Shown: in pieces, positions 1,766-64,000 of the stretch | Position numbering within the stretch: the stretch's first letter is position 1 | How the letters are laid out: each line of letters opens with the position of its first letter | NCBI GenBank assembly: GCA_010909165.1 | Contig: MU008197.1 | Span: 310,001 to 374,000 of the forward strand | Source: Anthoceros angustus | Taxonomy: Eukaryota; Plantae; Anthocerotophyta | DNA: 64,000 bases | Direction: 5' to 3' | The notes under the pieces: generated by a model | The model's database searches: none | The model's input: the letters and a program-made list of their open reading frames with translations, nothing else | Told to the model about the DNA's origin: nothing | Program-made: the position numbers and the translations under genes

Positions 1766-4700
1766 TCAAATCACACGGTTGAAGAGAAGCTGGTCAAAGT
1801 GGTGCTGCATCTTGGCTGAGGGGGAGGTCCAGCCGTCGTTGTCTGCGTAGAGGTAATATGCGACAATGGCATTGTGCAAAAAGACGAGTTTGCAGGGTGT
1901 GGGCACAGCCGATGGAGTGAAGACATGTTGCACCAGCTGTTTCATGTTGGATTCCACTATAGCTCGGATGTCGTGGTCCGCTTCCTCCTCGCTCTTCTCC
2001 GGGTACTCTCTCATATGAACGACCATACTGTTCACTTCCGATATCCCCTTCTGTGGCAATTTCAGGATTGGACATGGGACGGGTCATGTATGCTGTGTGA
2101 TGTATCAGACATGTGCAACCTCACCTTGACTACATATTAGCGTACCTGGTACGATCTGAGGTCGTTCAAGAGGCGCGCTACAATTGAGACCTTCATGTGG
2201 AGGTCGTAGTATTCCGAGTTGATGGCCTCCTCGCTCACCCCACACCGGGTATCAAGCCAGGTCCCAAACTGCAGAGCTCCGCGCTGATGCAGATTGCGCC
2301 GACTGGGATGAATTGGTTCCAGGTGGGAATGATGTCTTCCGCTTCCACTTGGCTCGGATGCTCACGCATTCGGCGTAGCGTTGCCACTGCGCGTGGGGGT
2401 AGGTGAGCCAATGCTTGCACAAGCAAGTGAGGATGCACTAGGCTGTTAGGAATGCGGAGAGTAGAGCCTTAAAGTGAAGTCACTCACCGATGCGATCACA
2501 TGCCTACTAACATCGCGGCCCTGCTCCTTGGATGCTTTGTCGGCTATCTCGACGATGGTGTCGAAGATGCCCATGAAAACGATGCGCTGCCTGTGGTTGG
2601 TGTGGTCGATCATGGACGGGTCCCAGCTGCAAAAGGACATAGGTGAGTTGAAGCAAGCAATTGCAGGCAGTGAGAAGGGACAGCTGGTCCGGTCGGCGGG
2701 TGACAGTGGAATTGCTACGAGTGGATGACCGGCTAGCAACGGTACCTTTTCGTGGCAGCCTGGAAACGGTCGAGCTCGTCCTGGGGAACTCCTGACAGGG
2801 TGGTGTAATCGTCGAGTATGGTGGCCAGGAGCATGAGTTGGGTCCTGGCTCTGCGCACCGCAGCCATCTCCGGTTCGAAGGAGGTGGCAGCCGCGCACGG
2901 GAAGCCTGGAATCACCCTGTCGTGGCGAGCAAATGGGAGACGGTCGAAGCGACATTCTGATACCCATCTACGGGTGCACAGAGCGAATTGGAAGCGAAGT
3001 TAAGGCAAGCTTAAGACTTTCCTCTTCAGGCATTGTGGCTATTAGTGAGGATCGGTTGATGGGAAGCTTGAAATGCACGTACTCCTTCAATGATTCCAGC
3101 TCCGCGCGGTACATGGTTTGCAATTTGTTGAAGTCTGCTTTTGCAAGGGTTAGGAATGTTGAATTGCAGACGCCATACATCCTGTACAATTCGGAAAGAG
3201 ATGGATGCAGTTACATGGATGCCCAATTGATTTCTCAGCTGTCAGGAGCTCATCATTGCGTGAAAGCGATGTGAGACGGAAGGTACTCACCTGTAGAGGC
3301 TCTTGGCGATCCACACGTCGCCAGGGCCGTAGTGGTCGATATAAGCCCTGGTCTCAAAGCGAGGCATACTGGCGTACCAGGGCAGCTCAAAGCGTACTCC
3401 AGCTCTCCTCGGAGATCTTTGGACACAACCCACCTGTCCGATAGCTGCGGCTGTCGCTGTTTCTCCCAGATGAAAGCGCGTGTACTCCCAGGCCTTGTCC
3501 AGCAAGTCCTCGTGTGGGAAGCGCATCTCGGACGCGCGGTGCAGATTGAACATGGGGTGACATCGGTGTCCAGGTCGCACCCGTGGTCGACCCAGCACGA
3601 GAAGTGGTCTCCTTGCAGAATGCCTTGAACACATCTGCATCACATGAGTAGTAGGCATACAGTGTCACCACAAGTGCGATAAGCGGGAACAAGCCCAAGG
3701 ATGCAAGTCAAGATACATGCGTGAATGTACAGAGGGCACCTGCAGAGACAGGATAGCCGTGCTGGCGCAGCAAGCGAAATCCCATGCTGGTGTCGTCCAG
3801 GTCGGTGACATTGCAATCGGTGGCCCAGCTCAGGCCCCGTTCCGTCCACCGCTGGAAGGCGAAGTCCAGGATGTCCTTGATCTCGGGCTTGAAGTAGCGC
3901 GCGATTCCCAGTCGCTGCAGCCTGTCCACGATCCACAGCCGCTCGAAGATGTCGACAGGCGAGTGGTTGGGGATAACACCCCCCGTCGTCTCCACCAGCA
4001 GGGTGAGGTACTGCAGCGCCTTGCTGTCGCCGGTGTGCATGTACAAGCAGGCGGTGGAGGCCGGAGAGGTGAGCATGTGGCCCGCCGGCGACTGCAGCCT
4101 CCGGATCTTGTCCCAGTCGATGCCCTCCAGGGCGTCCATCCCTTCCAGCGACGCCAGCAGCGTCGTGGGCTGCGACTCCACCAACTCCACCGGAATCTGC
4201 TTCAGCTTGCGCTCCCGCTCCCGCAGAAGGGTGCTGGTGGCGGGCGCGTCGTACGGCAGATCCAGCCCCAGCGCGCTCGCCCGCTCCAGCATGGCCGGGA
4301 ACACCATCTCGAACCCCGCGGTTCTGTGGATGTGGTTCTCGGAATCCACCTGGTGCATATGCTGCCGGATGAAGGCGCACCCTTTCCGCACGGCATCGGG
4401 ATGCACGCTCCATGTTCGCAGCGCTACCACGCACGCCAGAGTCGCCACCAGGCGATCGTAGACGTTGAAGAGGTACGCGTCGCCCGCCCAGCATCCTTCC
4501 GGCAGCTGCGAACGCACCACCCACTCCAGCGCCTCGGGGAAGTGCGGCCCCGGGACGCCGCCCACCGCCGGCACCATGGCCACCCAGGCCGCGTCGTAGG
4601 GGCTCCCGGAGATGGCCCCGTCCCCGAGTGACCGCAGCATGCTCTGGATGCTTCGGATCGACTCCTGGATCTCCGCATCTTTACCCGGATCATATCGATC

Positions 4701-4994
4701 ATCCGGAAGTGGCACAGCCCGCTCCAGAACCTCCACCCCGGGCACTGCAGCTTGTAAATCCGTGGCCTGAGCTTGCAGCGGCCCGAGTCCATGCGCAGCG
4801 GACGCCTGCACGTGCCAGGCCTCGACATGTGCCGCCGTGGAAGCCTTGCATCCTCTCCTTCTCTTGATCGACTGGACGATATCGATGCTCCCCCCAAGTA
4901 TTTTGGCCACTCCGCGTCGGCGTTGCGGACACCACGTCGAGCTGGTCGGAGAAGCAACTGTAGCTGCTGCTCTTGTGACAGTCGCTGCAGCCAT
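1766..4994 (-). CDS. Tri-domain (gamma-beta-alpha) plant diterpene synthase, CPS/KS-like, with N-terminal plastid transit peptide; several indels in exons 2 and 6
   Basis: GT-AG exons: 4994-3740, 3634-3291, 3181-3083, 2967-2746, 2626-2488, 2386-2146, 2050-1766 (TGA). Motifs: SPYDAAWVA, QLPEGCW, LLASLEG, DIFERLWIVDRLQRLGIARYF, DLDD (DxDD, 3792-3803), LPWYASMPRFETRAYI, VWIAKSLYR, LAKADFN, FEPE, DDYTT, WDPS, QGRDV, RLLNDLRSYQ. The N-terminus from ATG 4994 is Ala/Ser/Thr/Arg-rich. Confidence 0.93.
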
Positions 4995-6269: not shown

Positions 6270-6760
6270 ATAAGTTTCACCAAAGCCATCCAATCCATCT
6301 AAGACCTCCCACGCCGGTGTGTCAGCCATTATGCCCATGGACTCATCGCTTCACCGATCCATGTACATAATCGTCTAAGCCTCTAAACATGCGGGCCAGC
6401 CTATCCTTCAGCGGAAAGTGCCACAAAACTGTCCTGGGAGCTCTCCTAGCGCCGTTTGGCAATCCACTGCCCTCGACATATCTGTCTGCAGAACATTTCA
6501 TGCATTCCACATGGTCCGCATATGGGCCCCGAAACAGCATGCAGTCATTTACACAGGCATGAATTTTCTTGAAGTGCGGCCCAAAGGATTACAATGTCTT
6601 TCTAGCCTCTGTTATCGACCTGGGCAGCGAATTGCTCTCAGGTAACAAATGCAGCCAACAACCTGCAATAAATCTGTCATGGCCACGTCAGATATGCCAT
6701 AACATGATTGAATGGAAAGCAAGAGCAGGGTCGCAGTTAAGCGGGACTCTTTTGAGGTGC
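6270..6760 (-). mobile_element. CACTA (En/Spm) transposase fragment
   Basis: Peptides LLLLSIQSCYGISDVAMTDLL, LPESNSLP, CMLFRGPYADHVECMKCSADRY, PRTVLWHFPLKDRLARMF and MADTPAW match the TnpD/Transposase_21 N-terminal region. Frameshifted and truncated. Confidence 0.8.
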
Positions 6761-7984: not shown

Positions 7985-8950
7985 CTACCATCGCGGCCTC
8001 CACATCGATTCCAGGCTAGTACCATGACTTCCTCTGTTTATGCGCCTAATAATTGCCGACAGGACTTCACGCCGTTGCGACCCCGGGTTCTTATTGTGCT
8101 TGTTGCCTGCCCTTTTGGAATAAACAACATTCAAAGTTACACAGCGATGTTTCATTGCACATAACAACACGTTGCAGAAGGAACTTGCCTCAGTCACCCA
8201 CCTTTCTGATCGCCGGCTAATGCTATTCATTAAACAGTCCATATTGACAAGAACGCCCTCCACGTAATTCCTGTCTTGGGCCGCCAAGGAAGAGCCCTTG
8301 ATGTTGAGCCTCCCTTCCAGCCACACTCGAGCATTTCGGAACGCCGCATATGCTCGACAAAGCTGGGTTCGGTCCTATTCAACTTGCTCACCCAAGATCG
8401 AAAGTCATTGACACTCAATGAATCCAATGCCTCGAGAAGCCGGAGCTCGTGCACCCGCTTGTCCAGCTCCATTCTGATTTCCTTTTGAGTAGGTGTCATC
8501 ATCCTAGGCGACACTCGCATTATGGCTTCGTGCAAATGAAGCTTATAGTCCACCGCCGCCCGTATGACACCTTTCACCGCCCACCGCAGTGTGCTATCCC
8601 AAGGCGTTGCATCATGCTCCACTGCTAAGTTCACCAGACGCCGCTCGTTTGACACCCAGCAAACCACCAACCGATTGAGATCCTTCAAGTCTTCTTTACT
8701 TTGTGCAGAGGTGATGCCCTCCAACACCCTGTCTGTTGCCCACGTTCTAGGAATTTGCAAACGCAACCAATTACCAGCCGGTTTTGGTATCGCTACGTGC
8801 GTAACCACGCCTACTGTGTAAACTTCCACCTGCTCACGATCAAACAATCTGTTCAAGCGAGCACTCATGATCAGCGGACAAGGTGGAAGTGGCGCGCACC
8901 GACCAACCGAACTTGGGGGCGTAGGAACGGCCATCGCCTTGTTTGGGGTA
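7985..8950 (-). pseudogene. Unknown protein-coding remnant, truncated at the LTR border; homologous to 41668-41952
   Basis: About 240 open codons (8950-8230) continue in another frame to 7985. They align residue by residue with ORF 41668-41952 (MxARL..F[DE]RE..EV...G...H[VI]AIP.....WL....PRT...DR[VL]L.G). Confidence 0.5.
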
Positions 8951-11900
8951 TGTGGCGCGACTTTCACTGATGGCCAGCCGGGCGCGCACAATCCCGTGTC
9001 GTTGTAGGAAGAAGTCCGTTCCCAAGGGAATGATAGGCTCCGCCACTGCTTCGTGTGATTCCTACGCACTTAGCGCCTGCCCCTCAACACACATACTCCT
9101 AACTACTCACAACGCTCACCGACAGTCTTGTGATGGCTAAACGTTTAGGGACCTGTCACAGTATCGCTCACATCCCACTCACACATCCATTCTTTCCTCT
9201 CTCTCACGCTACACTCCTCATTTTAGAAAAGACGCTGGTTACACCGACCTCCTCCGCTGCTCGCTGGCCTCTCCGTCCGGCTCAGACGCCTCCCGAGTTC
9301 CTCCGGCTCACACGCTGGCCGGGCCGTGCCCGCACGGGTCACCGCCACCCTTCCCGCACACACCACAACACGCTTAGGTCCGTCACTGTGACCCGATCAA
9401 TCTCCCCGAGCTGGCTCGCCTGACTCAGACTCACGTTAGCAAGAAGACACACAAAGGTCTGCAAGAACGCATCAACACCAAGAGAAAGATGATTTATTCT
9501 GTGGCGGCCTTAGCCCTCTTATACTACGCCAAGGTCGGCGCCTTTATTACACCTCTATTCTCGAAATGAGGGCCAGCCGGTGGTACCCCTAACCACCACT
9601 ACCCCCGCCTATTCCACCTATCTGGCGGGCTGGGATGGCCTCATTCCTTCTCAAGTACAAAGCCGACCTCCTCCCGAGGGTCTGCGGCGCACCAACGGAT
9701 CCCCACTCCCGAGTTTGGACCTCGTGGACCGTTCTTGACTCGAGTCCGGACCTCTAGGTCCGTCCCCTCCGGGTCCGGCCTCCGCCCCGGCCTGAGTCCG
9801 GCCTCTGGGACCGGATTGCCTCCGGGTCCGGCCTGACCCAACCTTCCTCGGGTCCGGTCCGACTGTGCCACTAGAGTCCGATCCCTAAGTCCAGATTTCC
9901 TCTGGGGCCGGACTGATCCGCCTTTCTGGAGTCCGGACAAAGTCCGACCTCGCTCCCTCGGGCATGCCTCGCCGGCTAGCCACGGGTTCATCCACGAGCC
10001 TCCCTTGGTTCCCGAATGCCCTTGCCCCTTTCCCTTCCAAGATCCTCCCTCGCCCCTTCCATGCGAGGGTGCCGGGGCTTACCTCCTGTGGCGCCCCTTC
10101 CTCCTCTGCCTCCCGCCGCCTCCTTCGCCGCTGGGCCCTAGGACTTGTGCTGCCCCGGTCCGCCCTCCTCGCCTCCTTCCGTCCCTTCTCGAAGTCCACC
10201 TCCGCCTAGGGTGGCGCAGACCTCCAGAGCCTTGAGGAGCTCAAGGTAGTAGTAAGTCGGAATCGACTTGTGAATCGCCTCCACATGAGCCCGAGCACCC
10301 GACTCTCCTCCAGGTGCTCCGAGCAGATCGCTCGCCCGCCGGCCTGCCTCCGTGGCTGCGCACCGTAGGCGGGCGGACTTGAGGCCGCCAAGGCCGCCTC
10401 ACCTCTTGCAACCTTCGCCGCACGCTCTCCTCCTCCTCTGTTGTTCAGCCCGCCATTATGGCCATGGAGCCGAGCTCCTTCGCTTCTCGCAACCGGACGA
10501 GCAATTGCATTTTCCTCCAAAGTTTCCTCCCTTCTTCTATTCTTCCTGAGGTCCTCCACTTCCTTCTCCAGCGGCCGGTATCCCCGTCCGACTCCTCGGC
10601 TTCCGCCACGCCCCGCCGCAACCTGCGACCGAACTCCTTGCACCGTTATTCTCCTCCGCTTCAAGCGGAGCTGAGGCGCCACCTCTCGCCAAGTCTTGGA
10701 TTCTCGCTGAGAACCCCCGCCTCCGATGCATCTTGAGTTGCAACCCAAGGTGTCCTTGTTGTCCTCCAGCCTCCGCCTCCGCCTCTTCTACCTCCGCACT
10801 GCACTCGAGGTCCCCAATCTCCCGGTGCCGGCCTCCGCCTCACGGCCGACCGCAGCTTGTTCCGGCCTCGGCCTCGATTGGCCGCGCCTCGGCCGCCTCC
10901 ACCGGCCCGATCACGATAGTGATCGCGATCGGCCTCGCCGTGGCCTCCGCCTCCACCTTCACCGAGCCTCTTGGCTCGTCCGCCGGCCGCCTCCGAGATC
11001 CTGCCTCCGCTGCCCAAGGCCCTTCGCTCGCCGCCTCCGCAGAGGTCCTCCGCCTGCTTGGGCCTCTGGCTCTCACTGCTCCTCCACTGAAGGAATTTGG
11101 TCCGTCCTGGATGGACCAGACCTCCTCTCGCCTCCGGCTTCCTCAATCCGCCGAGCTGGGCCTTCCTTCGCCTCCTGGCCTCCAACCGCCTCCCGGAGGA
11201 GCACCATGCGCCCGGTGGCTTCCACCTCCGGCCTTCTCGCCATCCCGCATGACAGCATACCGGCCCATGACGGTAGCTGGACCGCCGTGTTTCCTCCACG
11301 GCCGCCGAGGCTCCCACAAAGTCCGAGGAGCCGCATCTCACGGTCCGTCAAGGACCTCCATACAGCCCGAGTAAGTCCGGACCGGGTTCTCGGACCCAAT
11401 CAGACCCTTAGGTCCCGAGAGCCCCGAGCTTCCTCCTTGGCCCTTTTGGCCGCGAGCTCCGCCGCCTTTTCTCCCTGGGCCCATGAGGTGATGGAGTCCG
11501 GAGCACGCCTTTGCCTTCCCCGCGGCGACAGACGCTCGATGCGCTGCCGCTGTCCTCCGCCCGGGCTGGCCCTTCGCCTCCCATCGCTTCCTCCGCTTGC
11601 CACCCGGCAGGGAAGAGGTACTGCACCGACCGGTGCCGCTGGTAGCCGTGGTCTTGCGCTCGCCTCTCCGGTCCGGCCTCACCGAGTGATGGCCGGCGGG
11701 GCCGGGGCCGGCTGCCGCCGGCTGCTCGGGTTGGGGCACCAAGGAGGAGGCGGGGAATTGCTTCCCATACTTCCGGTGGTGAGGGGTCCGCCCACGTATG
11801 GAGTCCGAATCCCTCCGCCTCCTCCCGAGTCCGCTTTGGTTTTCGACTGCCTCCTCCTCCGGCGCCTTGCCCGCCTCCACTTCCGGAGGCCTCGGGCCCT

Positions 11901-13144
11901 TCCCGAGCGCCGCCAAGCCTCCTTCCCGAGGAGTTCAAATGCCCCATACATGGATCGTATGGGGACACCCTGAGATGGCGGCTTCGCCTCCGAGCTTGAG
12001 CCTCGCTAAACCGGGCGAAGATAATCCTCCTCACGCCTTCTTCCTCCGCGGCAGAACACTATTAGATTATCACCAAGGTGATCCACCTTGGTGAGTAGGT
12101 TCCAGGATATGATCCGCCACCGCCTCGACTCGACCGGCCCAACAGTTCTGGATATCGCCCAACCAGGGTCCGCTGCCCCTCCTTAGCATCGCTGGGTGGC
12201 TGGACCTATCTTCTCGCCTTGAGGCCCGCACCACTCCCTCTTCCTCCTTGGGGCGGTTGTAGGCCGTGACCTCCAAGGTCCATCGCCTTGGGTCCTCCCG
12301 AGGTTCTTGGACCGCACCTCCTTATTGACCGCCGCCAAAGATCTTCCGCAAACTCCCGGACCAGTGACACAATGTCCGCACCATTTGGAACACATCCAAA
12401 TGCCACTCCCGCACCAATTCCCCGCCTCGAGCCGAGCCCAAAGTCCGGATAGCGCCGGTCACAATGTTGCCTCCACAAGGTTCCATGGCTCCCAAACTTC
12501 CGCTGGCTTTTGGGTGCCATCGCCTTCTCTCCCTTGCCGCTTGTCAAGACCGCACGCTGAGCCTCTTCGCCGCTCGCCTCCGACCTCAACGGTGAGCCGA
12601 CGAAGACGCCCGAGTGTCCCACGAGATACCGCCAGAGAGCCGGGATCGGAGCGCAAGAGATCGCGAGAATTGTCTCGAGGTCAGCATAAATGACCTTCTT
12701 CCGCCACCACGCCGGAGTAACTGGGCGGAGGGCGCCTTCCCCGTCAGAATCGCCGAGGTCTCATGGCTTACTCGCCACGCTGACTGCCTTACCGCCTGCA
12801 CGCCCCACGCTGCCTGGGCGTGAATACCGCTATAACGGCCTCGCAAGGTTACGGCCCGACCTCACATGCCCGCTGCCTCCACCTGTGGTCGCCCACGTGG
12901 CGCCGCCTCACCCCACGCCCAACTTCTAAGTTACCGGCGATTTATCCCGCCTCGGTCCCGGAGTGGGTCCGCCCACCTGCCCGCCATCGAGGTCTAAGCA
13001 CGCTCCTCACTCGAGTCAGAGTATACTCCGAGTGCCCCGAGTGCTAACCGCTTATTTCCTCCTTTTCGCCTCATTTTATCCTTCGCCCACACAAAAAACA
13101 AAACCTACCTAATTTCTAACCCCTGTGGAAGTCCGTAGTCCACA
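8951..13144 (-). repeat. 3' LTR (about 4.2 kb)
   Basis: Plus strand runs TGTGGCGCGA...GTAGTCCACA. Colinear over its length with 19516-23569 and directly adjacent to the PPT. Confidence 0.8.
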
Positions 13145-15131
13145 TACTCCTTCTCACCGCTACGCCTCCGCCAACACTAAGCGTGGTACTTTTCACCCGC
13201 CACCCGCTCACCCGAGTGGGCGTAGCCACCATCCAACCGCCGTCGAACGGACCCATTGGGGTATACTCAGACTTGGTAAGGCCCCATCCATCGAGGTGGA
13301 GTTTACCCGGAAGTGCATATGTCGGCCGCCGTAAAGGAGAGCGATCTCCTCCTTCACATACTCCGATTCCTAAGGCGCCTATCATGCCACCATGCTGATT
13401 CTCACTTGCATCCTGCTGCGCCTCTTCCGGCCTCCTCAGAGTCAGATAAACCCTAGCAACCGCCTCCGCTCTCTTCATCCGCGCCTTTCCATCATGACCC
13501 GAGTGTTGGCACCTCAAACTCCACCGATAACGGGTGAGTGCCCATAGGTCGAGCACGGAGTTCGTTGGGTTACCTTTTCTCACGCCTCATACCGATGGCT
13601 GTATCCCAGGCATAGTTAACCGTCACCTTATTGAGGATGCCATAAGTTGGTCTTTCTTCCACACCATCTTTGGATTGTAGGGGCCGTTACGACGTGTGAT
13701 GCCGAAATAGTCCGTCATTGTCTATCACATCATTGAGGAAATGGGTTCTATCGCTACCGCCACGGACACCCATACCTTGTGATGATGTTTTCAGAGGAAT
13801 TTGGCCACCGTGCTCGCAGAGTCCGCCTCGGTAGCGACCGCTTCAACCCACCGTGCAGAGTCCTGCCACCAAGATGTACCGCCTGTGCCCGGGTCGCTAT
13901 CGAGGTCCAACGGGTCGATGCCCATTTCTCAAAAGGCGCTGCTAGTATGGGCACTAACGGCCATTGAGTTGTGGCCGGCTTCCCGATCCACAAGCATCAC
14001 ACTTCTTCACAACCGGTGTGTTTCCCCACATGGTCCACCGCATCACCTCCAAGATTTTCTTGGTGGTGAGTGCTAATGCTTATTTCTCCTTTTTCCTCCT
14101 ATCCTTCGCATCACACAAAAAACAAAATCCTACCTAATTTCTAACCCCCTGTGGAAGTCCAGTCCACATACTCCTTCTCACTGCCTCCGCCAACACGGCG
14201 TGGTACTTTTCACCCGCCACCCGCTCACCCGAGGGCGCAACACCATCCAACCGCCGTCGAACGGACCCATTGGGGTATACTGCACGACTTGGTAAGGTCC
14301 CATCCATCGAGGTGGAGTTTACCCGGAAGTGCATATGTCGGCCGTCGAAAGGAGGGCCGATCTCCTCCTTCACATACTCCCGATTCCTAAGGCGCCTATC
14401 ATGCCACATGCTGATTCTGTACTCGCTTGCATCCGCTGCGCCTCTTCCGGTCCTCCGACAGACAAACCCTAGCAACCGCCTCCAGCTGGCTCTTCATCCG
14501 TTAAGCGCCCATCATGACCCGGAGTGTTGGCACCTCAAACTCGACCGCATAACGGGTGAGTGCCCATAGGTCGAATAATACGGAGTTCGTTGCGGTTACC
14601 TTCTCCGCCGCTCAACGCCCATAGCGCGATGGCTTTGTATCCCGGCATAGTTAACCCGCTTATTGAGGATGCGCAGATAAGTCCATTGGTCTTCCCACAC
14701 CGCTGGCCTTTGATAGGGGGCCGCTTTACGATGTGTGATGCCGAAATAGTCCGTATTGCGCTTATCACATCATTGAGGAAATGGGTTCCCCTATCGCTAC
14801 AACCGCAACGGACACCCATACCTTGTGATGATGTTTTCGAGAGGAATTTGGCCACCGTGCTCGCAGAGTCCGCTCTAGTAGCGACCGCCCAACCCACCGG
14901 TGCGTGAGTCCGCTGCCACCAAGATGTACCGCTGTGTGCCCGGTCGCTATCGATAGGTCCAACGGGTCGATGCCCCATTTCTCAAAAGGCGCTAGTGCTA
15001 GTATGGGCACTAACGGCCATTGAGTGTGTGGCGCCCTTCCCGATCCACCGACAAGCATCACACTTCACACTTGGTGTGTTTCCCCATACATGGTGGGCCA
15101 CCACTCACCTCCAAGATTTTCTTGGTGGTGA
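13041..15131. repeat. About 1.03-kb tandem duplication of the integrase 3' half, PPT and first ~100 bp of the LTR
   Basis: 13041-14068 is colinear with 14069-15131; for example ctaacccc..tgtggaagtcc..agtccacatactccttctc appears near 13120 and again near 14145. Confidence 0.8.
13145..13160 (-). other. Polypurine tract
   Basis: Minus strand GCGGTGAGAAGGAGTA lies immediately before the TGTGG start of the 3' LTR. Confidence 0.7.
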
Positions 15132-18100
15132 CTCACACGCAATGTCCACCACCTAGTCCTTCGTGCATCCCTTTATTACCACCTCCGCTCACTGCTGGAG
15201 GTACCTTCTGCTCCACACCCCGCCTACCTTAAAGATGCACCTTATACAAAGGGCGAAGTGCACAAAGGCTAACCCGGTTCACTGCAGTAGCTCCATCTCC
15301 CATAGGTACTGCTCCAACTCCGCTAAGAGGGCCGCCCGGCCCGCCTCCTTCTCCGCTTCGCTGGGTCCTGCTCACCAGGGGTTTGTCCTGTGCTCCTCTC
15401 CTCCTCCTCTATCGCCACCAATTCCTCATCCGGAAGGCGCCCTCTGATCCCCGCAGATGGCTCCGCTTTAACTGGACAAGAAGTCCTGTGTTGCCGCCCT
15501 TGCCTAGTCTCCACCTCAAATGTGAACTCCTAGCAACAGTAATCCACCTCGCCCCGACAAGTCCGCTTTGTTCACCAAATGCTTGAGCGAAGTGATCAAC
15601 ATAGAACACAAACTCAGGCGTAAGGTAGTCCGAATTTCTTAACCATACCATCCCAATGCCGCCTCGCCCGTAGTAGTGTACCTCGCGGCGTGAGCCGCCT
15701 TCCGTAGTAGATTGGGTGATCCCTCCGCTTATCATCTTTTGATCGAGCACACCCCGATGGCGGCGCCGACATCCACATACACATGGAATCGCTTCCCGGG
15801 CCCGGTCCTTTGAGTCGGGCACACTGAGTGGTCGGAGGTCTCGAATGCCGCCTCCTTCTCGCGCCCAGTCCCATTCCTCCTTCCCGAGTAGCTCATAGCT
15901 GGAGGCCCGCTTTGCAAAATCTTGTATGAAACGCCTATAGTAACCTACCATGCCTGTGAACTCGAACTCCTTCAAGTTCTGGAGGGCCGTAGGATGGATG
16001 ACTTTCACCTTGTCTTGGTCCACCTCTATCCCTCTCTTACACTCGGTGCCCCAACAAGATTCCCTCTCCATGCCAAGTAGCATTTCTCGGATGCGCATTG
16101 AGTCTCCTACATCGCTCCAAACACTTCCGAAATGTCCATGTTTGTCCTCCTCCGTGCATGTAAGTCGCCCAAGAACACCTCCATGAAGTCCTCAGAATTT
16201 TAAGACATTGGTCACCATCCGCATAAATGATCCGGTGCTGTCATCCCAAGGCGCCCGCTTTGTAGGCAAACGCCCCCACTCCGTGGTGAATGTTGTCTTA
16301 TCCCATCCGACTTAGGTGTAATCGGTTGTAGCCGGAGTAGCCGCCCAAGAAGGAGTAGGTACCGCCCGCCACCTTGTCCAAGATGTCGTCCACAAAGGGC
16401 ATGGGAAATGGTCCTTTCCGCGGGCGTTCAGCTTTCCACCCGACAGACCGAATCGCCGCTTTCTTGACGACCACAATGGGCGCCACCCACTCACTTTACA
16501 CGATTGGGAAGATGATGTCCGCTTCCGTGATACTTATCCAGACTTCCTTGACCTTGAGCGAGTGCTTGGGATTCGATACCGCCTAATCCGAACAGCACCG
16601 CCTCCGGCTTCAGATCTATCCGGTTCGCCTAATCGCTTCGGAATGCCTTCATATCCGTGACCTTGAAAGCAAACACCTACTGAATTCCCCAACAACGTGG
16701 TGAGGTCTTGTTTAACCCTCCGATGCTCATGGAATTTGAGGAATTCCGGGCGAACCTCCACGCCTTCCACATCGCCGGACTGCCTCCCTTTCTCTCGCCG
16801 CTCACACGTCCAAGCCGTCCCTCCATCCGGGTTCATCTTCACGCATTCCCCACTCCCGAAAGAGCTCGTCCAAGTGAAACGGGTTACTTCTCTACTTCCC
16901 GCCTCCGCTGGACCCTCCTCTTGATTGCCTTCCCCGCTCTTGTCCGCCGAGTCCACCCTAAAACAATCGATGACCTCCCCACCTCCGCCTCCAAAGTGTC
17001 CCTCCCAGAATCCATCTCCTCCTCGACCACGTGGGGAAAGGGTAGTCCTCATTCGTATCCTCGCTCATCGCCCCACTGCCGGGCGGAGGTGTACCCTCCG
17101 TGGTGCTTACGGTTTCACAAGACGTGTCCTTACCTGTAATCGCTACCTGCCCTTCCCTCACCTTCGGATCCCACCACCTTGAAGTGTATCTCCTTCCGTC
17201 CAAGTGTAGTTTTGTCTCGAGCGAGGCTGGGCCGCCCAACAGACCTCATACCCTGTGAGGTCCGGTCCGATGACGACAAAATCTAATGTATAGGGGCTCC
17301 GCTATGGTGGCTTGACTGGACAACTCGGCCGCGACATGTCCGCCATCCCGAGGGTTTTGGTGGATGGCTCAAGGTGAACCCCACTGCCTTGTGGCCTCGT
17401 GATGAGGTTCACTCCCCCGTATCTAGAGGCACGCTTTTAATTACACACCCGCACTTCCACCGCACCATCGGCGCCTGTGGTCCGTATATACTTACCTCCA
17501 CGTTTGCCTTCCCACCAAGGAGTTCCGGCGTGGTTGCGCTTCCCGATGGCCTTCCTGACTTCGCCGATACTGGTTGTCCTTTAACAATCGCCTAAGGGAC
17601 ACCAAGTGTTGTTGGTCCATCATCAAGTCGGCCACCTTGAAAGGGCCGGTGGTTCTCTGCCACACGCGTCGCCTTTGTCTCCTCCGGCTTCACCGTGGTG
17701 GCGGACCACTGGGTCCTCGGAGTTCTTCTTGAAGCATCTCGGCCACTTCAACCACATCCGGTGGAATCGCGGGCGCTGTGAGAGTCCGCTTCTCCCGAGA
17801 CTTTGGCTGGTTTCTTCCGTAGGCGGCTTTAACTCGCCTCTTGGCGGGTTCGGCTTCCTGGGTGTTCCGTCCTCCGTATCCGTGGACTATCCTCATTTTC
17901 TCTTCCTCTTACTGCCTCCGCTCCTCCTTTCGGCGACTCGGTTGACACTTCCAGACTCCAGTCCGCCTTCTTCTCCTTGGCCGAACTTGCTTCGCACCAC
18001 CTGCTTGTGCCCCTGGTGCCTCCTCCCACTCCGCCACAGGCCTTCAATTTGTAGCAGGCGCCTTAGGAGGGGGGGCGTGGTCTTGGCTCCCCACCGGGGT

Positions 18101-19450
18101 GGCGAGCGCACGTCCTCGAGCGAGGATTCGGACACAAGGTACCGCCCATGTGCCCCGCCGCTACAATCTCCACACGCTCAAAGTCCCGCTTGTCCGGTGG
18201 GGTATGGACAGTGCTGGAGTAGTGTCCGGGGGTTCCAGCACCCACCGCCCGAGAATTCGAGGGGCTCCCATGCGTGTCAGACGGAGGTCGGCGCATGACG
18301 GACCACCGCTGGGGTACATCGCCCGGATACCGTGGTCCCGGGTGCTTCTTGCACTTGGTATGCCTCCCACTGCTCTCGACTCTTCCCGTAGTCATACTCC
18401 ACCGGTTCACGGGTCCGAGGCGCTTGGCCTCGAATGCCCATGTTGGTGACACACCGCACACCATGATGAGTACGGACTGCGGTGGCACGCCGCTCTTTAT
18501 CCTTCACCGTTGATCGTCAACTCCTCCACCCTCTTCATTACCTGCTCTAGATCTTCCCCGCTACTTCCTTCAAAGGAGCTGGGGGACCTCTGCAGTGCTG
18601 CATCATGACCTCCTTCTTTTCCACCCTCCGCCGACCACGGGCTTCTTCTTCTTTATTTTCTACGGGGTTCTTCTTCTTCCATGGCCTCCTGGATTCTTCC
18701 TGAGTCCTCTTCCTCCTCCCACGCTCGGCCTCATCATCCTCCTCGTCCGAGGGTTCTTCATCTTCGAGTCCGACCCCGCTTTCTTCTTTTCTTCTTTCCT
18801 CCTGAGGAGTCCGCCGCCGTTGGTGCATCGATTCTTCATAGTTCTCCCGCCCGACCGCCTTGCTCACATCTTTCTTCGCCAACAAAGAAGACGTGCTTAG
18901 CCATTGGCTTGGATAAGCCACCGCGAACCAACGTACCGCGCATGGTAGTGTGAGGGTGCCGTCAGCGCGTAGAACCGCTCGATGTACGATCCCAACTTCT
19001 CCGCCTTTCCTCGCCTGATTCTCGAGTTTGACAAGACATAGCCTTCTTGATCGATTCCGGAATCTTTCTAAGAAGGCATCCTTCAATGCTCAAGGTTGCG
19101 GTGGGTGCGCTCGAGGTCGATTTCCTCCGATACCACCGAGCCGCTCGCAGGACCCCTTGAACAATTGAATGAGTCGCGCATCCGAACCTTCTCCGCTGAA
19201 GTTTGCCCGAGACACAAATCCTCCAAAGGTTTCGTCTCTCCTTCTTACCTCCAAAGAGAATACGCTTGCTTGGTCGACGTCGCCATCCGCTGATCGGTAA
19301 GGGATGAGGAACCACACCGCCCCACCGGCCGCGTCCTCCTCTCGATCCGGCAACCCACCACACCACCGCTCGGTGCCCTCGCCCGAGCTCGCCGGCCTCT
19401 CACGCGCGCCGAGCGCCGCCACAACGTCCGACTCTCGCAATCTTCCTTAA
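13200..19450 (-). pseudogene. Gag-Pol polyprotein, heavily frameshifted
   Basis: gag (KDAFLERF; GHYSST knuckle remnant near 18220); protease VPLDTG (about 17415-17435); RT APIVVVKK, PFPMPFVDDILDKVAG, YSFLGGYSGYN (about 16300-16490) and GMVGYYRRFIQDFAK; RNase H FHVYVD and HPIYY; integrase APFEKWGID and GTHFLNDVI; C-terminal FPGKLHL. Confidence 0.88.
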
Positions 19451-19497
19451 CTACCTCACGCCCTCCACGCATCCACGCTGCTACGGAACGATTTCAT

Positions 19498-19512
19498 TCC
19501 CCGCAACCGCCA
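19498..19512 (-). other. Primer binding site (tRNA-Asp type, Athila-like)
   Basis: Minus strand TGGCGGTTGCGGGGA lies 3 nt inside the 5' LTR. It resembles the Athila PBS TGGCGCCGTTGCCGGGGA with small deletions. Confidence 0.65.
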
Positions 19513-19515
19513 AAA

Positions 19516-41446: not shown

Positions 41447-41667
41447 CCCGTCACCATGTCCGAGCTAGGTCTCCTTGCACAAGGCCGTCCCCTGATTTAG
41501 CGTCATCCTTTCCGGAGGGTTTCCAAGACCACATCAGAATGAGACCAGCAAAGTACCGCTTGCCTCCATCTTCAACCTTCATCGAATTGTCAAGGGCATT
41601 GGGGTGCTCGCCCATCAAGCTGTCCGTCAGCTTGACGTGGATATAGCAATCCTCTCTGCCTCCACAA

Positions 41668-42947: not shown

Positions 42948-44410
42948 ATGGAAAAGTGCATCGTATGGCGCCCCTGCTGCAAATGTAAGAAGATGAAGCC
43001 TTTGCCTGGAGATGTTGCATGGCAGCACTGTTTCAGGCAATTCCGCCAAGGGATTGCACCCCGACAACCGGATCCACGAGAATTTATAATGCAGAATGTA
43101 GTTGATACGGCCGACCCGAATTCGGCTGGACCATTGGGGTCCGGGATACTGGCCCGTGGCCAACCTGCCACGCTCGAGGGGGGGCAAATGCAAGGCAATG
43201 ATAACTGTGAAGAGGATATGTGGCGCACCGATGCGTACATTATGGACCCGCTAGGAGAGGATGAAGATGGCACATCCGAGGGAAGTGCAGATGACATTGC
43301 CGAACGAGTGGACTCTAGTTTTTTTGATGGAGTGGGTGCGGATGGTGCTTTGATTTGGGCAAGTTTCATGGTGGCGTGACCTTTGCCCGGTGCCAAAGTG
43401 GATGTTCTCTCGGTCGTTATGATTGTCCTCGAAATACAATCAAAGTACGGAGTGAGCCACGCTGCTATGGATGCCCTTTTCCAAGCTTTGCATACGGCAA
43501 TCCGTGACCTTGAAAGCAAACACCTCGCTGAATTCCCCCAACAGCTGGGTGAGGTCTCGCTTCAACTCCTCTGGCATGCCTTTGCGGAATTTGAAGAATT
43601 TGCCCGGGCGGACCTCCACGTCTTCCACATCGTCAGGATTGACCGTCTCCCTTTCCGTCGCTGGCCACGCCTGCCGCCATCCTCCATCCGGGGTTCATCC
43701 TCACGCATCCCCCACTCTCGGAAAAGCTCGCCTGAGGTAAACCGGATCACTTCTTCGGGGTCCTCCCCCTCCTCGTTCGGTGGGTCTCCTTCCTTGCCTT
43801 TGTCTTCCTGGCTAGGCGCGGCCTCTACTCGGAAACAATTAACCACCTCCGCTCCAAAGGTGTCCCTCCGGTAGTACCAGAGGGGAATTGCCTTCCGGCG
43901 AGCCAAGCGGAAGCTTCGGGCATTATTTCATGTGTGTCGATGGGATGTGAGCGGATCCATGTATGTCCTAAAGGGTGCATGCTGTTTAGAGGGCAATATT
44001 CGAGGGAGAAGAATTGCTTGAAATGTGGCCTTCCTCTTCACGATCGTGAAGAGGGAACGACCGAGCAAAGTCATGTGGTACTTCCCTTTGAAGAGGTGCC
44101 GACGTATGTTCGTTATTCCACGGCCCTGGCCTTGGTGGCCCATCGGCGCAACTCCGGAGACCGGTGGAAATGGCACTAATGGCAGATACGCCCGCATGGG
44201 CTACACTGGATGCGATTGATGGTTTCGGGGAGGAAGACCGTAATCTCTGATTTGGCTTAAGCACTGATGGCATTAATCCTCTTGACAAGCATTCGACGTC
44301 TGATGTGGCAGTTCTGCCGAACTATAATTTGGCCCCTTGAAGACCATACGGAAGAATTATATTGGAGCATGTTGGTGCTCGTTCATTCTAAAGTATACAT
44401 TGAACCATTG
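42948..44410 (+). mobile_element. CACTA transposase 5' portion, degenerate and interrupted
   Basis: CCKCKK..QHC N-terminal region, VLEIQSKYGVSHAAMDALF, PEGNCLP, ERIHVCPKGCMLFRG..CLKCG, KVMWYFPL, MADTPAW, RNL*FGLSTDGINP, NYNLAP. Confidence 0.85.
43501..43870 (-). mobile_element. Internal gypsy pol fragment (PR-RT linker) inserted in the CACTA transposase
   Basis: Similar to about 16654-17005 (tccgtgaccttgaaagcaaacacc...aa(g)gtgtccctcc). TCCG occurs at both ends. Confidence 0.75.
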
Positions 44411-53524: not shown

Positions 53525-56105
53525 TCAAGTCGCAAGCAGATGCTGCAGCTTTTTTCTCAAAGAATCTCCAACTTTTCTGAATACAGTGCCGTCGAAACGT
53601 GCGACAGCAATGGGACTGCCGGAGGGACGCAGACGTCCGTACCTCACCTTTTGCTAAAACTGGAATGGACTGTCAGAAAGATCCATAGTCCCAGACGTCC
53701 TACCTCACCTTTTACTAAAACCCACTGGATAAAATATTGAAGCACTACAGTTGGAGACCTTGTCGGACCCATAACCTTCGACGGCAGGATCACTTTATCC
53801 CAAGGTTTACGCCAAGCTCTGATGTATTACATAGCTCGGTTGGCAGACGAGTAGTCCTGGACAGCCTCGATGCGTATGGGGACACCGGTTTTGGGGTATG
53901 GCAGACCTGAAACGACTAGGCCAGTGTCTGGCTTGTCTACTGTCCACCTGTTTCAACACGGGTCGGCACCCATCGGTTAGCAAAGAAGTATACATGTAGA
54001 GAGGGCACTGTAAATGACTTGTGAGCTATTGCAGAAGAATTATGGGGACTCACCTGAATTTAAGCATCATGTGATGCAACATCACTTTCATGTTCATTAG
54101 TGCCAGCTCCTTCCCAAGGCACAATCTGCTTCCACCTCCCCACGGCAGCAGGGTGAAGGGCTTCGGTGGCACCTGCTGATAGCATCAGAACGCAGTGTGT
54201 CACAAGATAACTCCCAAAATGTTGTTCGTTGTCTATGATTCGGAGACGTCTGTAATGATTCTAGTGTTGAATTCAAGTATCAAGCTCTTACATCGAAGCG
54301 AGAGGGATTGAAGATCTCTGGGTCTTGGAAGATTTCGGGACTACGGTGCAAGTTTTGAGTGTCCAGCACAAAGTTCCAGCCTTTAGGAATGTGGTATCCT
54401 GCAGGTGGCACATAAGGGTCAGGTAGCGAGAAAGCTTCGGGAAAATCTTGGCAGTAATCAAGCACTGTGACCCATGTTAGGACTCCCCGCTTGGAGTAGG
54501 GAAGGAATATTTACGGTTGCCAATGCCAGGTGCAGCATACATACCGTTGAATGTAAAGTCCTCCTTGACCTGTCGATGCAACCAGAAAGCGATAGAAGAC
54601 ACTCAGGTGCCTCGTTGATCACCTGCATGCACACAGGAGACAAGACAGATGGATCTTAGCTTACGCCAGATTCCAGTGAGTATTGGGCCACTACTAGGTT
54701 GGAGGATGTTGAGGATCCGAGTCTCACTTTCAAGGTGTAGGCCATCGGTTGGCCGAGATCCGCCCATGTCAGTGGCTCTCCAGCTTGTTTGTTTCTTCTC
54801 AGAGCCAAATGCTCAGCCTACAGTTCACAAACACAAAACCAAACGCCAAGGTTGGGCTCGCTTGGATCCAAGCTGTTCCAAACCAATTTCGATTCCTATG
54901 GACGACGTCTGTGATATAGCCCCGGGGCCAGGCTCACCAGCAGCTTCTCCTTGACGCTGGGATTCTCATGTAGCAGCTTGGCAAGCCAGGTGAGTGTGCT
55001 GGCGGTGGTCTCAAAGCCAGCAACGACCATGGTGAGCAGATTGTCCCTCAGCTGCTCGTCGTCCAGGGCAGGCTTGTCGCTTGAAGAATCGGGGTCGACT
55101 GCCTTCATCATTTCGCTCAGCAGGTCGCTGCGAACAAATTTTCCGCTCCTTCTCAGCGCAAGTTCAGTGTCGAACATTTTACCCAGCTCCTTTCTTGCCT
55201 GCATGCCCAGTCCACTTGCACTGTTAGATTTATTGTGGCCCATTGCAAGCCCTGGGAGAAATTGGACACCTGTGCTCCAAATTGGGCCTGGAATGAATTC
55301 CCACCTGCATGGCCTTGTGAAAGGCGAATCCAGGAACATTGATGGGCACCGTGATCAAGCTGGTACTCACTGTTTCGGTGAGCTCCAAGCTCCTGTCACG
55401 CACTGAACCAGGACCCCAGCTCAGCACCAGTCCCGCGATCACATGATAAGCGAACTGCGCACCGTCAGCAACTACCAGTTAGCAAACATCACGAGCTCTG
55501 CACAAACATTGCAATTAGATTGCAGACAAACGGTAAGAGTGGCCCATTCCTTGGTCACCTTGGCCCATGTCGTGTCTCATGACGGGGACGTCGCCCAGTT
55601 TCCAGGAACTGAGGGTCTCTAGAGCCGATTGCTCCGACACCGGCAGATACTTCCTAATGCCTTCGCCCATGAAGGATTCGTTGAGAATTTTGCGATAGAA
55701 CTTGTGCGTGGGGCCGTGCACATTGAGGAGCGACTCCTTGCCCACCAACTGCCTCGCGGGGAGGAACTGGTGCGCCTGTACCAGCTTGTGCTCCATTGAG
55801 AGCAAGAGCTTGGCCGCCTCGGCGCCCGTGAAAACACATACGGACTCCTAACACATGCGACTTGAACACATCGCCATACTTGCGAAAGCGCTTGGCCGTG
55901 AATGTCTCCGGATCCCCAACCTTGAAGTAGCCCAGCAGCTCCATCGTCTCTCCCAGCAGGGGGAAGCCCATGGTCCCCGGCAGCTGCTTCGAGCCCTTGG
56001 GCGCCCACATCCCCTCCGCTCCCAGTACCTCCACACTGGCCAGGCCACAGCTAGCACCGCAATTGCAAGCGCCACTCCAATCTCCACACCCAATGTCACT
56101 TCCAT
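53525..56105 (-). CDS. Cytochrome P450, CYP85 clan; indels in exons 1 and 5
   Basis: Exons: 56105-55559, 55454-55305, 55198-54938, 54817-54728, 54622-54545, 54398-54292, 54172-54054, and an uncertain last exon at about 53724-53525. Motifs: N-terminal TM anchor, [29 protein letters not shown]-helix AGFETTA, VINEA (ExxR disrupted), [14 protein letters not shown], heme [11 protein letters not shown]. Confidence 0.92.
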
Positions 56106-60107: not shown

Positions 60108-62882
60108 GTACGACAGACGGTTCGACCATATGCTTTGGGAATCGTGCACGATTTCTATAGACTAACACATTCCCCGGCGGGCGACGGTCCTGGAGCGTGC
60201 ACGATTCGTGCTGGCCAAGCAATTCACGACTTTCCTGACTTTTCCAAGCTCTATCTTCCAGCTGGAGAGCTTGGTCCACAGGATTCCCAGCCATCGCCGG
60301 TGTGCGCGCGTCACTCAAGTGCGTGGACCCCCCTCCAGGAGCCTTGTTGCATGGTATAGACTTTAGTCTACCTGTTCACAGTCGGGTCACACTTCCTCAG
60401 GTATGACTCAGGGTTACTGAAGTACTTACTTTGTGACAAAAACGTGAGACTACTCCTCTCCTGTGACTTGTGATGAAGGATACTGCCAGTGAGAATCTCC
60501 CTTGTTCCTCCAGCACATATGGCCGTGATTTTTATTTCTTAATCCTGCATCTCAATCACAAGAGCAATGACACCTCAAGTTTTGGCAAGGTATGCAACAA
60601 CTACCCTCACATCAGCCACCTTTGTCGTCTGTTCATGACGCTGCCTCCCGATGGACACTGTAGAAAGGTTTTCGTCTGATCACGAGGACCTTGGGAGCGT
60701 CTGCACCTTGGACATAATCACCGAATTGCTGCCCCCAGGCTGAAGGGCTGGGTTTGGTAACTCCCCCTTGCAGGGTCTAAGTCCAACATGTCAAGCTTGA
60801 AAGTCACCTTTTCATCAGTGAGCGCTTATAGTCCAGATAATCCTCCAGGTGTTGAAATTTCTCGCAGTCTAAGTCTGCTATCCGCAACTCCACGGCATCT
60901 TTGGGACCCTGGTACCAACAACCATCTCTCAGAGTTCGTACTATGTACCTGCTAAAGCTTTTGAAGCTCTTTTCATCACCTCATGGACTAAACGTTCTGC
61001 TTTCTCACCCGCAACCCTAATCTCAAGATAATGACTTGTGGAGATGGCGCTTCCTGCACTGCCAAGTGCAAGCGCGTACCCCGGCTTTGTAAAAGCCGCT
61101 CCAGCAGGGCAGGTGTGTTACCGTACGCGTCTGCATCAAAGGACAGCCGTATCCAGACACAGAGCATCCAGACACAAATGCTCATTCGGATGATGCCGGG
61201 CATTTGCTGCCGCAATGGAGGATCGGGACGAGATGCAGCCCTGCGTGCGGCCGCATGGGGGACAAGTGGAGACGACACATTAAAAGATGGGAGAGGCAGA
61301 AGCTCTGTCGATGAAGGGGTTTGAATCATGGGGAGAGCGATTGCACAGACCCGGCACTATGGCAGAACGGGAGACGGCGACGCCGCCAACATGCTGGAGC
61401 TGGTGGAGAAGCAGAGGCCGCCGGCTGGCTCTACCCGCCTGGATCGCTGCTGGTGCGCATCACCATGCGCGCCATCAATCCCACCGATCTCATGACCGTC
61501 CGGTACGACAGACGGTTCGACCATATGCTTTGGGAATCGTGCACGATTTCTATAGACTAACACATTCCCCGGCGGGCGACGGTCCTGGAGCGTGCACGAT
61601 TCGTGCTGGCCAAGCAATTCACGACTTTCCTGACTTTTCCAAGCTCTATCTTCCAGCTGGAGCTTGGTCCACAGGATTCCCAGCCATCGCCGGTGTGCGC
61701 GTCACTCAAGTGCGTGGACCCTCCAGGAGCCTTGTTGCATGGTATAGACTTTAGTCTACCTGTTCACAGTCGGGTCACACTTCCTCAGGTATGACTCAGG
61801 GTTACTGAAGTACTTACTTTGTGACAAAAACGTGAGACTACTCCTCTCCTGTGACTTGTGATGAAGGATACTGCCAGTGAGAATCTCCCTTGTTCCTCCA
61901 GCACATATGGCCGTGATTTTTATTTCTTAATCCTGCATCTCAATCACAAGAGCAATGACACCTCAAGTTTTGGCAAGGTATGCAACAACTACCCTCACAT
62001 CAGCCACCTTTGTCGTCTGTTCATGACGCTGCCTCCCGATGGACACTGTAGAAAGGTTTTCGTCTGATCACGAGGACCTTGGGAGCGTCTGCACCTTGGA
62101 CATAATCACTGAATTGCTGCCCCAGGCTGAAGGGCTGGGTTTGGTAACTCCCTTGCAGGGGTCTAAGTCCAACATGTCAAGCTTGAAAGTCACCTTTCAT
62201 CAGTGAGCGCTTATAGTCCAGATAATCCTCCAGGTGTTGAAATTTCTCGCAGTCTAAGTCTGCTATCCGCAACTCCACGGCATCTTTGGGACCCTGGTAC
62301 CAACAACCATCTCTCAGAGTTCGTACTATGTACCTGCTAAAGCTTTTGAAGCTCTTTTCATCACCTCATGGACTAAACGTTCTGCTTTCTCACCCGCAAC
62401 CCTAATCTCAAGATAATGACTTGTGGAGATGGCGCTTCCTGCACTGCCAAGTGCAAGCGCGTACCCGGCTTTGTAAAAGCCGCTCCAGCAGGGCAGGTGT
62501 GTGTACGCGTCTGCATCAAAGGACAGCCGTATCCAGACACAGAGCATCCAGACACAAATGCTCATTCGGATGATGCCGGGCATTTGCTGCCGCAATGGAG
62601 GATCGGGACGAGATGCAGCCCTGCGTGCGGCCGCATGGGGGACAAGTGGAGACGACACATTAAAAGATGGGAGAGGCAGAAGCTCTGTCGATGAAGGGGT
62701 TTGAATCATGGGGAGAGCGATTGCACAGACCCGGCACTATGGCAGAACGGGAGACGGCGACGCCGCCAACATGCTGGAGCTGGTGGAGAAGCAGAGGCCG
62801 CCGGCTGGCTCTACCCCGCCTGGATCGCTGCTGGTGCGCATCACCATGCGCGCCATCAATCCCACCGATCTCATGACCGTCC
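60108..62882. repeat. About 1.39-kb near-identical tandem duplication of the MDR upstream region plus the first ~175 bp of exon 1
   Basis: 60108-61502 vs 61503-62882. A truncated exon-1 copy lies at 61328-61502. Confidence 0.92.
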
Positions 62883-64000
62883 GATACGATAGGTTCCGGG
62901 ACCTGGTGGACGCGGATCCCGCCACCCAGGTGATTGTGGGCAGCGATGGATGCGGCGGCGTCGATGAGGTCAGCTGAATTTATTGGATATAGACCTAGTG
63001 ATGTGAGAACGGTGGTATGTGCTGGTTGGTCGTGGCGACTGGCGACTGATCCGAGGGATTGTGGTGCATCCGGATCCGTGTGTGGTGATCGGAGACGGCG
63101 TGATCCAGTTCCGGGTCGGGCAGAGAGTGACGCCAATCATCTTCCCCAGATACTTGAAGGACGCGCAGGGGTCGTGGCAGGAGTACCTTGTGGTGGATGC
63201 TGCGCACGTGTTTCCGATCCCTGAGAGCGTGAGCGACGAGGCTGCCACGCAGTTCGTCGTGAATTCGTGCACCGCTGCTGGCTTGTTGAAGGAGGTTGGA
63301 GTCCCTGCGGGCGACTTCGTGCTGCAGACTGCTGATTCCTCTGTGATTGGAAGGTAACGGGCCCGATCGATTTGTCCTTTTCGATTCCAATGATGTTGTC
63401 TACGGGATGGGGACGAGGGATTGCCTTGTGTCATGGGCTCCCGAGTGTGAGACCACCACGTTAAATCTGAATGTGGGTGCTCAAAAAAATTCTGATCCAT
63501 GGGCTCAGTGCCTGATCATGAGGGGTGGATCGGAAGTGCACCCACAGGCAGGTGATTCAGCTGGCCAGGCACTGGGGGATCATGACTATCAACATTGTGG
63601 GGCGGGATACTGTAAAGGCGGAGTTGGACGCTCTCGGAGCCGACGTTGTCAACAATTCCTGCTGCAAAGGTTCATGAACTGAATTCATTCCAGACGCAGG
63701 ACCAGATCAAAAGCATGCATTTATGCAGCCTTGAAGTACTAGTTCCTCTGTCTCTGATTGTGGGCAACACGCCGCCGGTATCAGATGTGCTGCAGAAGGT
63801 CAAGGAAGTGACAGGAGGCAAGCTTGTGTACGCAGCGTTTGACGCAGTGGTTGGAAATATAACTCCGGTAACTTGTATATTCTATTTCGTTCTCTTTTCT
63901 CTTATGGTGGTTGCACAAAAATGACTTTAATTTATTGTAATTTGAATGCAGATGGTGGCATCGTGTGTGTGAGAGTTCGGGAGGCTGCTACTATCGGGGG
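62708..64000 (+). CDS. MDR-superfamily NAD(P)H oxidoreductase, enoyl-thioester-reductase-like (no Zn ligands evident); runs off the window; possibly pseudogenised
   Basis: Exons: 62708-62968, about 63088-63353, 63548-63669, 63785-63867, 63952 onward. Motifs: LLVRITMRAINPTDL, IVGSDGCG, GDGVIQFRVGQRV, GSWQEY, SDEAATQFVVN, GDFVLQTADSSVIGRQVIQLA, TINIV, VTGGKLVYAAFDAV. The exon 2 acceptor lacks AG and there is an in-frame TGA at 63970-63972. Confidence 0.85.

Follow-up and report, generated by a model that had tools for sequence, protein, structure and literature searches.

The stretch of DNA under study, hereafter the window, comprises 64,000 nucleotides of the hornwort Anthoceros angustus (GenBank assembly GCA_010909165.1, contig MU008197.1, positions 310,001 to 374,000), and all coordinates given here count from its first letter. 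With a GC content of about 55% and short introns of about 90-120 bases, it is plant nuclear DNA. Three non-homologous biosynthetic genes of different enzyme classes stand together within 62 kb: a class II, copalyl diphosphate synthase-like diterpene synthase (1766-4994, minus strand), a cytochrome P450 of the CYP85 clan (53827-56105, minus strand), 49 kb away from the synthase, and the 5' part of a medium-chain dehydrogenase/reductase (MDR) of the quinone/enoyl-reductase type (62708-64000, plus strand). An initial annotation, made by a model from the letters of the window, had placed a diterpene cyclase, a P450 of the CYP85 clan and an enoyl-reductase-like MDR at these positions and had interpreted them as a candidate diterpenoid gene cluster. 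Pfam, Protein Data Bank (PDB) matches and motif reading confirm the identity of synthase and P450 and, through weaker matches, agree with that of the MDR; the interpretation as a cluster is weighed below.

The diterpene synthase gene and its catalytic class

The synthase gene consists of about 863 codons in seven exons (exons 1 to 7: 3740-4994, 3291-3634, 3083-3181, 2746-2967, 2488-2626, 2146-2386 and 1766-2050, minus strand) and terminates with the stop codon TGA at 1766-1768. This model was obtained by reading all three frames and was then compared with L001, a 3.9-kb contig of the Logan assembly SRR33208241 that encodes a homologue of the synthase. The spliced gene models of the window entered all searches as single exons; the exons of L001 were joined only for the codon comparison. 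Pfam assigns the N-terminal domain Terpene_synth to exon 1 and the metal-binding domain Terpene_synth_C to later exons. Residues 124-442 of exon 1 align with abietadiene synthase (PDB-ID: 3s9v; E 1.4e-101), and the same exon aligns with the ent-copalyl diphosphate synthase (ent-CPS) of Arabidopsis (PDB-ID: 3pya; E 5.8e-99), in both cases across the gamma and beta domains. Pfam domains and PDB alignments together identify the three-domain fold of plant terpene synthases. The named relatives are all CPS-type enzymes of seed plants, with identities of 45-50%.

The first 418 codons of the gene occupy a single exon of 1.25 kb, and the entire coding region is interrupted by six short introns. Seed-plant genes of the CPS type have about 14 introns. 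The six-intron layout is common to the window gene and L001, and the low intron number appears to be a loss shared between the two.

The class II motif DxDD, which carries the general acid, is represented by DLDD (3785-3796, minus strand) in the context VTDLDDTSMG. It aligns to the DIDD of abietadiene synthase and is identical in L001. At the position of the class I motif DDxxD, where solved class I terpene synthases carry DDIYD and DDVYD in the alignment, a degenerate DDYTT is found (2800-2814, minus strand), which is also present in L001. By direct reading, the position of the second class I motif (NSE/DTE) displays NDLRSYQKG across the junction of exons 6 and 7 and lacks the final Glu; a PDB search with the piece containing this region gave no alignment to a terpene synthase. 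The pair of motifs that characterizes class I and bifunctional enzymes is hence absent. Since DDYTT replaces DDxxD and NDLRSYQKG replaces NSE/DTE, the enzyme is predicted to be class II only and to release a bicyclic copalyl-type diphosphate, not a finished scaffold. The designation as a scaffold-forming synthase in the initial annotation would therefore have to give way to that of an enzyme supplying a diphosphate intermediate. If the synthase stops at this intermediate, a class I synthase or a phosphatase is needed for the scaffold, and neither a class I terpene synthase nor another partner was recognised within the 64-kb window. We know of no P450 that accepts a copalyl-type diphosphate as its substrate.

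Comparison with L001 reveals an identity of 84% over exon 1 and of about 81% over all aligned codons. The exons show about 90% alignable identity, while the introns hardly align. Exons 3, 4 and 5 are equal in length in both genes, and the length of exon 2 agrees once five bases missing from the window are counted. The joined exons of L001 give a single open frame of 652 codons, and its exon 2 is open throughout. Between the two genes dN/dS amounts to 0.29 overall and to 0.29 in exon 2, with 0 in-frame stops in 635 usable codons. The synthase is under purifying selection, and this includes the most broken of its exons.

The P450 and MDR genes

The P450 gene is composed of eight exons on the minus strand (exons 1 to 8: 55559-56105, 55305-55471, 54938-55198, 54728-54817, 54545-54622, 54292-54398, 54054-54172 and 53827-53947), as derived from Pfam matches to p450 on two exons, reading of the DNA and mapping of the exons with homologues. 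Readable features are an N-terminal membrane anchor, a start typical of the CYP85 clan, the I-helix motif AGFETT, the motif PSRF and the loop with the heme-binding Cys. The ExxR motif reads E-A-P followed by a one-base gap, and filling of this gap would yield EAPR. Within the heme loop (54120-54150) Trp occupies a position at which P450s almost always carry Phe.

The C-terminal two thirds of the protein best match a transcript from the hornwort Nothoceros aenigmaticus, with 52-70% identity in most pieces. The heme loop of this homologue reads PFGIGPKICLG, with Lys at the usual Arg position. An exhaustive search with the I-helix exon of the window gene reached a top identity of 56%, and no orthologue of the size of an open reading frame (ORF) was found with this exon. 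A search with the hornwort homologue (P0028) returned four distant plant matches only, with identities of at most 35%, and one relative of this homologue is named beta-amyrin 11-oxidase-like. Plant matches of the window P450 that are named by function are mostly annotated as abscisic acid (ABA) 8'-hydroxylase. The placement in the CYP85 clan holds; because identity to seed-plant proteins of the clan is only 31-37%, no family within it can be assigned. Most probably the window P450 and its hornwort homologue represent a hornwort group with an unusual heme-binding signature.

The P450 was also considered as a candidate ent-kaurenoic acid oxidase (CYP88) that would act with an ent-CPS in the route to gibberellin precursors. 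This identity was set aside as less likely, the nearest named matches being ABA 8'-hydroxylase-like. The presence of ent-kaurenoic acid oxidase in hornworts has been reported (PMC9285615).

In the relative represented by the Logan assembly, the nearest P450 is located on contig L002 (SRR33208241, 972-1913), and its first 305 codons lie in one exon. The window P450 has two extra introns (55472-55558 and 55199-55304) in the stretch that is single-exon in L002, and therefore intron positions differ between these paralogues. Contigs L001 and L002 (3.9 and 4.4 kb) do not overlap, and their flanks have no counterpart in the window.

The MDR gene is truncated by the end of the window and was modeled by three-frame reading together with weak matches in Pfam, PDB and NCBIfam. 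Its exon 1 spans 62708-62968, exon 2 ends at 63353, exons 3 and 4 cover 63548-63669 and 63743-63867, and exon 5 starts at about 63952 (plus strand). For intron 1, the assembled sequence contains no in-phase acceptor. Scored as single exon pieces, the Pfam matches to ADH_N (E 4.5e-4 and 1.8e-3) and ADH_zinc_N (E 7e-3) all lie below the Pfam cut-offs. A PDB match was obtained to a bacterial quinone reductase (PDB-ID: 3gms; E 4e-6) and another to NDUEG3, and no significant PDB match was found with exons 1 and 3. NCBIfam gives a weak match to the PIG3-type quinone oxidoreductase, and in the Atlas only generic ADH_N clusters are hit. A likeness to mitochondrial enoyl reductase (MECR), which we presume from an impression of the motifs, was not confirmed. 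The protein thus appears to be a generic member of the quinone/enoyl-reductase type, without a specific link to terpenoids. The start codons of P450 and MDR face each other head to head with 6,603 bases between them, in agreement with the distance of about 6.6 kb given in the initial annotation.

At the 5' end of the MDR gene, self-comparison detects a 1.39-kb unit in two tandem copies (60108-61508 and 61503-62889, plus strand) with 98.6% identity. At its end, each copy carries the MDR promoter together with the initial ~185 bases of the MDR coding sequence. Between the copies there are 2 substitutions and 10 indel events, the latter mostly situated in runs of C, G or T or in GA and GC repeats. 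The duplication is either a very recent event under a noisy consensus or an artefact of the assembly.

Frame breaks and intergenic DNA

As assembled, the reading frame is broken six times in the synthase and three times in the P450, in all cases by gaps of 1-2 bases. Base-by-base alignment to L001 locates four of the synthase breaks in exon 2 (3385-3611, minus strand), at ~3611 (AAA to AA), 3557 (C5 to C4), 3466 (2 bases in a GA repeat) and 3385 (GG to G). The other two are one-base frame shifts in exon 6 (2250-2345, minus strand; ~2340 and ~2255), which three-frame reading reveals. This exon measures 241 bases, and 243 would restore the frame; as L001 ends before these shifts, they were judged without an outside comparison. 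In the P450, reading of the DNA places the breaks at ~56011 (G run), 55846 (GA repeat) and 54604 (inside ExxR; all minus strand). Eight of the nine breaks fall in short runs or in GA or other dinucleotide repeats, exon lengths become multiples of three after gap filling, and the conserved exons contain neither nonsense substitutions nor indels of three bases or more.

Natural divergence yields mostly substitutions, and for this reason the indel-rich difference between the 1.39-kb tandem copies is read as the likely signature of long-read consensus errors. Given gaps of 1-2 bases throughout, the indels between the tandem copies and a dN/dS of 0.29 without in-frame stop, most of the nine breaks are quite probably long-read assembly errors, real decay being clearly the less likely cause. 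It follows that both synthase and P450 are probably intact. The published assembly of A. angustus was built from Nanopore 1D reads and Illumina data (PMC7027989). Taken without the reads, frame breaks in this assembly are no ground for calling genes pseudogenes. The initial annotation had described the genes as near-complete and the cluster as possibly decaying: gene models could be recovered for the synthase and the P450, albeit with six and three frame breaks, respectively, and the breaks would fit such decay if real, most of them being probably due to the assembly.

The 49 kb between synthase and P450 consist to about half (about 25 kb) of repeats, as detected by self-BLAST. One part is an element resembling a long terminal repeat (LTR) retrotransposon (8997-23560), with 4.1-kb direct repeats at its two ends (8997-13133 and 19552-23560). 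The direct repeats share 80-83% identity at a distance of 10.5 kb and give the element the look of a giant-LTR retrotransposon. An inverted, internally duplicated copy of the same repeat family is located at 35455-41206, where 37924-35455 matches 10691-13123 at 77% and 37331-39221 matches 39209-41032 at 75%. A 2.2-kb tandem repeat occupies 29899-34379. About 20 ORFs of the repeat regions were tested against Pfam without a match to a transposon domain, and those tested inside the element gave neither pol nor gag. The statement of the initial annotation that transposable elements and repeats separate the genes therefore stands as far as repeats are concerned, while the label of transposable element derives from the repeat structure alone.

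Two similar ORFs with the motif PWERT.SYN (8233-9069, minus strand, and 41347-41643, plus strand), without Pfam match, lie in opposite orientation on either side of the giant direct repeats. Another two (6346-6588, minus strand, and 43736-44176, plus strand), likewise without Pfam match, share the Cys-rich motif H.C...CMLFRG....C..C. We take this motif to be reminiscent of the transposase-associated domain of CACTA-type elements, a likeness unsupported by Pfam.

According to the initial annotation, the synthase, P450 and MDR were the only near-complete host genes to be recognised. Two further pieces of host genes are however present. A fragment of a YlqF/RbgA-type ribosome-biogenesis GTPase (685-1017, plus strand) is recognised by its DTPG motif and a weak match to NCBIfam TIGR03596, and a tandem repeat of about 300 bases follows it at 1036-1635. 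An isolated protein-kinase exon with DFG lies at 26241-26642 (minus strand); no further kinase exons were found near it, and it is probably a gene fragment.

Relationship between the genes and comparison with known systems

The explanation that we prefer, with a probability of about 45%, is that synthase and P450 represent a repeat-expanded copy of a hornwort pair of P450 and class II synthase, that both genes are probably intact and that the MDR is unrelated to them. In the proposed mechanism, an aspartate of DLDD would protonate geranylgeranyl diphosphate and thereby generate bicyclic copalyl or labdadienyl diphosphate, and the scaffold would be finished by a separate class I synthase or phosphatase encoded outside the window. 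The P450, positioned 49 kb upstream of the synthase on the same strand, would be a member of a hornwort-specific family of the CYP85 clan. The order of P450 followed by synthase may be recurrent in the genome, and repeat insertions would have pushed the pair apart at this locus, with the MDR as a bystander. The two genes, each present once in the window, may also share a pathway. The orientation of the genes, with the P450 upstream of the synthase on the same strand, and the repeats that make up about 25 kb of the gap support the pairing. Moreover, A. angustus possesses 46 CYP85 genes, among which homologues of ABA 8'-hydroxylase are unusually abundant, and many of its expanded families occur in tandem arrays (PMC7027989).

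Several observations weigh against such a pair. The synthase has a relative of 84% identity in the Logan run and the P450 has none above 56%, and therefore the two genes may not share a history. Absent a class I partner, the P450 is without an obvious substrate. The frame breaks are unevenly distributed, with none in the 1.25-kb exon 1 and four in the 344-base exon 2, a pattern which is simply explained neither by errors nor by decay, and the frames as assembled, if taken literally, leave synthase and P450 dead. Finally, 46 CYP85 genes in 119 Mb (PMC7027989) would place one of them within 51 kb of any given gene in about 4% of cases, a chance rate that should not be neglected where the synthase family is large and that leaves the proximity suggestive but not compelling.

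If the breaks are real, synthase and P450 would be recently dead pseudogenes of a former pair in a repeat-rich region. Nine breaks, including the one in the essential ExxR motif, the failure to find a close orthologue of the P450 and the repeat-rich setting are in line with such a relic. We nevertheless regard it as doubtful, since nonsense substitutions and long or three-base indels are absent from the conserved exons, all breaks comprise 1-2 bases, even the most broken exon has a dN/dS of 0.29, and the near-identical 1.39-kb copies are equally dominated by indels, which points to consensus errors. Rather unlikely, too, is a neighborhood by chance, in which real but unrelated genes, intact or not, came to lie within 50-60 kb because their families expanded. 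The gap of 49 kb, the missing class I partner in the window and the generic MDR fit this explanation, and the published expansion of CYP85 and CYP71 genes raises the chance rate (PMC7027989); against it stands the expected CYP85 rate of only about 4% within 51 kb.

The pathway proposed in the initial annotation, with cyclisation by the synthase, oxidation by the P450 and reduction by the MDR leading to a new labdane-related diterpenoid, finds no support in the genes of the window. In its favor are the three enzyme classes within 62 kb and the head-to-head arrangement of P450 and MDR, as well as the diterpenoid clusters of synthase, P450s and dehydrogenase in rice and a moss. However, a class II-only synthase alone supplies no substrate for the P450, the window shows no recognisable class I synthase with which the enzymes of one pathway to the scaffold would be complete, and 49 kb separate synthase and P450. 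Shared use of a promoter by P450 and MDR is unlikely as well, given the 6.6 kb of repeat-containing DNA between their starts. The MDR lacks assignment to a specific family, and in a genome that contains many genes for tailoring enzymes one such gene in the vicinity is expected by chance. A working cluster of all three genes is accordingly very improbable. A bolder form of the preferred pairing, which we consider a long shot, would be a recurrent module evolved in hornworts, consisting of a lineage-specific CYP85-clan P450 and a class II-only synthase, of which the present locus would be an old, repeat-expanded copy. Together with a class I partner encoded elsewhere such a module could give rise to specialised labdane-type diterpenoids, with the MDR possibly acting as a new tailoring reductase. 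If true, this would represent an independent origin of the clustering of terpene synthases and P450s in the earliest-branching bryophyte lineage.

Among known enzymes, the synthase most closely resembles the class II synthases of the TPS-c type, such as ent-CPS of Arabidopsis (PDB-ID: 3pya) and the syn-CPS OsCPS4 of rice (PDB-ID: 8i6p), with which it shares the three domains, the DxDD motif and the lost class I motif DDxxD; exon 1 matches these enzymes at E 1e-90 to 1e-99. It differs from them by an identity of 45-50% to the named seed-plant enzymes, by DLDD in place of the usual DIDD or DVDD, and by a gene with six short introns and a first exon of 418 codons compared with about 14 introns.

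The P450 finds its closest parallel in the expanded 'ABA 8'-hydroxylase-like' P450s of the CYP85 clan of A. angustus, which Zhang et al. (2020) tie to ABA breakdown and drought (PMC7027989). The window P450 belongs to the same clan and has similar nearest named matches, yet an identity of 31-37% to seed-plant members does not support membership in CYP707. The main text of that paper (PMC7027989) contains no mention of 'diterpen', 'kaurene' or 'gibberellin', and a literature search found no paper on linkage of a diterpene synthase and a P450 in hornworts.

At the level of gene arrangement, the linked synthase, P450 and reductase resemble the momilactone clusters. The window differs from these clusters by the lack of a class I enzyme, by an MDR in place of a short-chain dehydrogenase/reductase (SDR) and by the 49-kb gap. 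With two genes 49 kb apart, broken frames and no class I partner in the window, it constitutes the weakest kind of instance and by itself adds little. Seed plants and one moss have well-documented clusters of diterpenoid genes. In rice and in the moss Calohypnum plumiforme, the momilactone clusters unite diterpene synthase, P450s and dehydrogenase in the genome; KSL4 or a bifunctional synthase provides their class I activity, the dehydrogenase is of the SDR type, and the clusters are co-expressed and have been proven biochemically. The cluster of C. plumiforme demonstrates that bryophytes can have diterpenoid clusters. If the pairing described here is real and recurrent, clustering of terpene synthases with P450s would arise readily even in the earliest-diverging bryophytes, and the pair would offer a route to the diterpenoid chemistry of hornworts.

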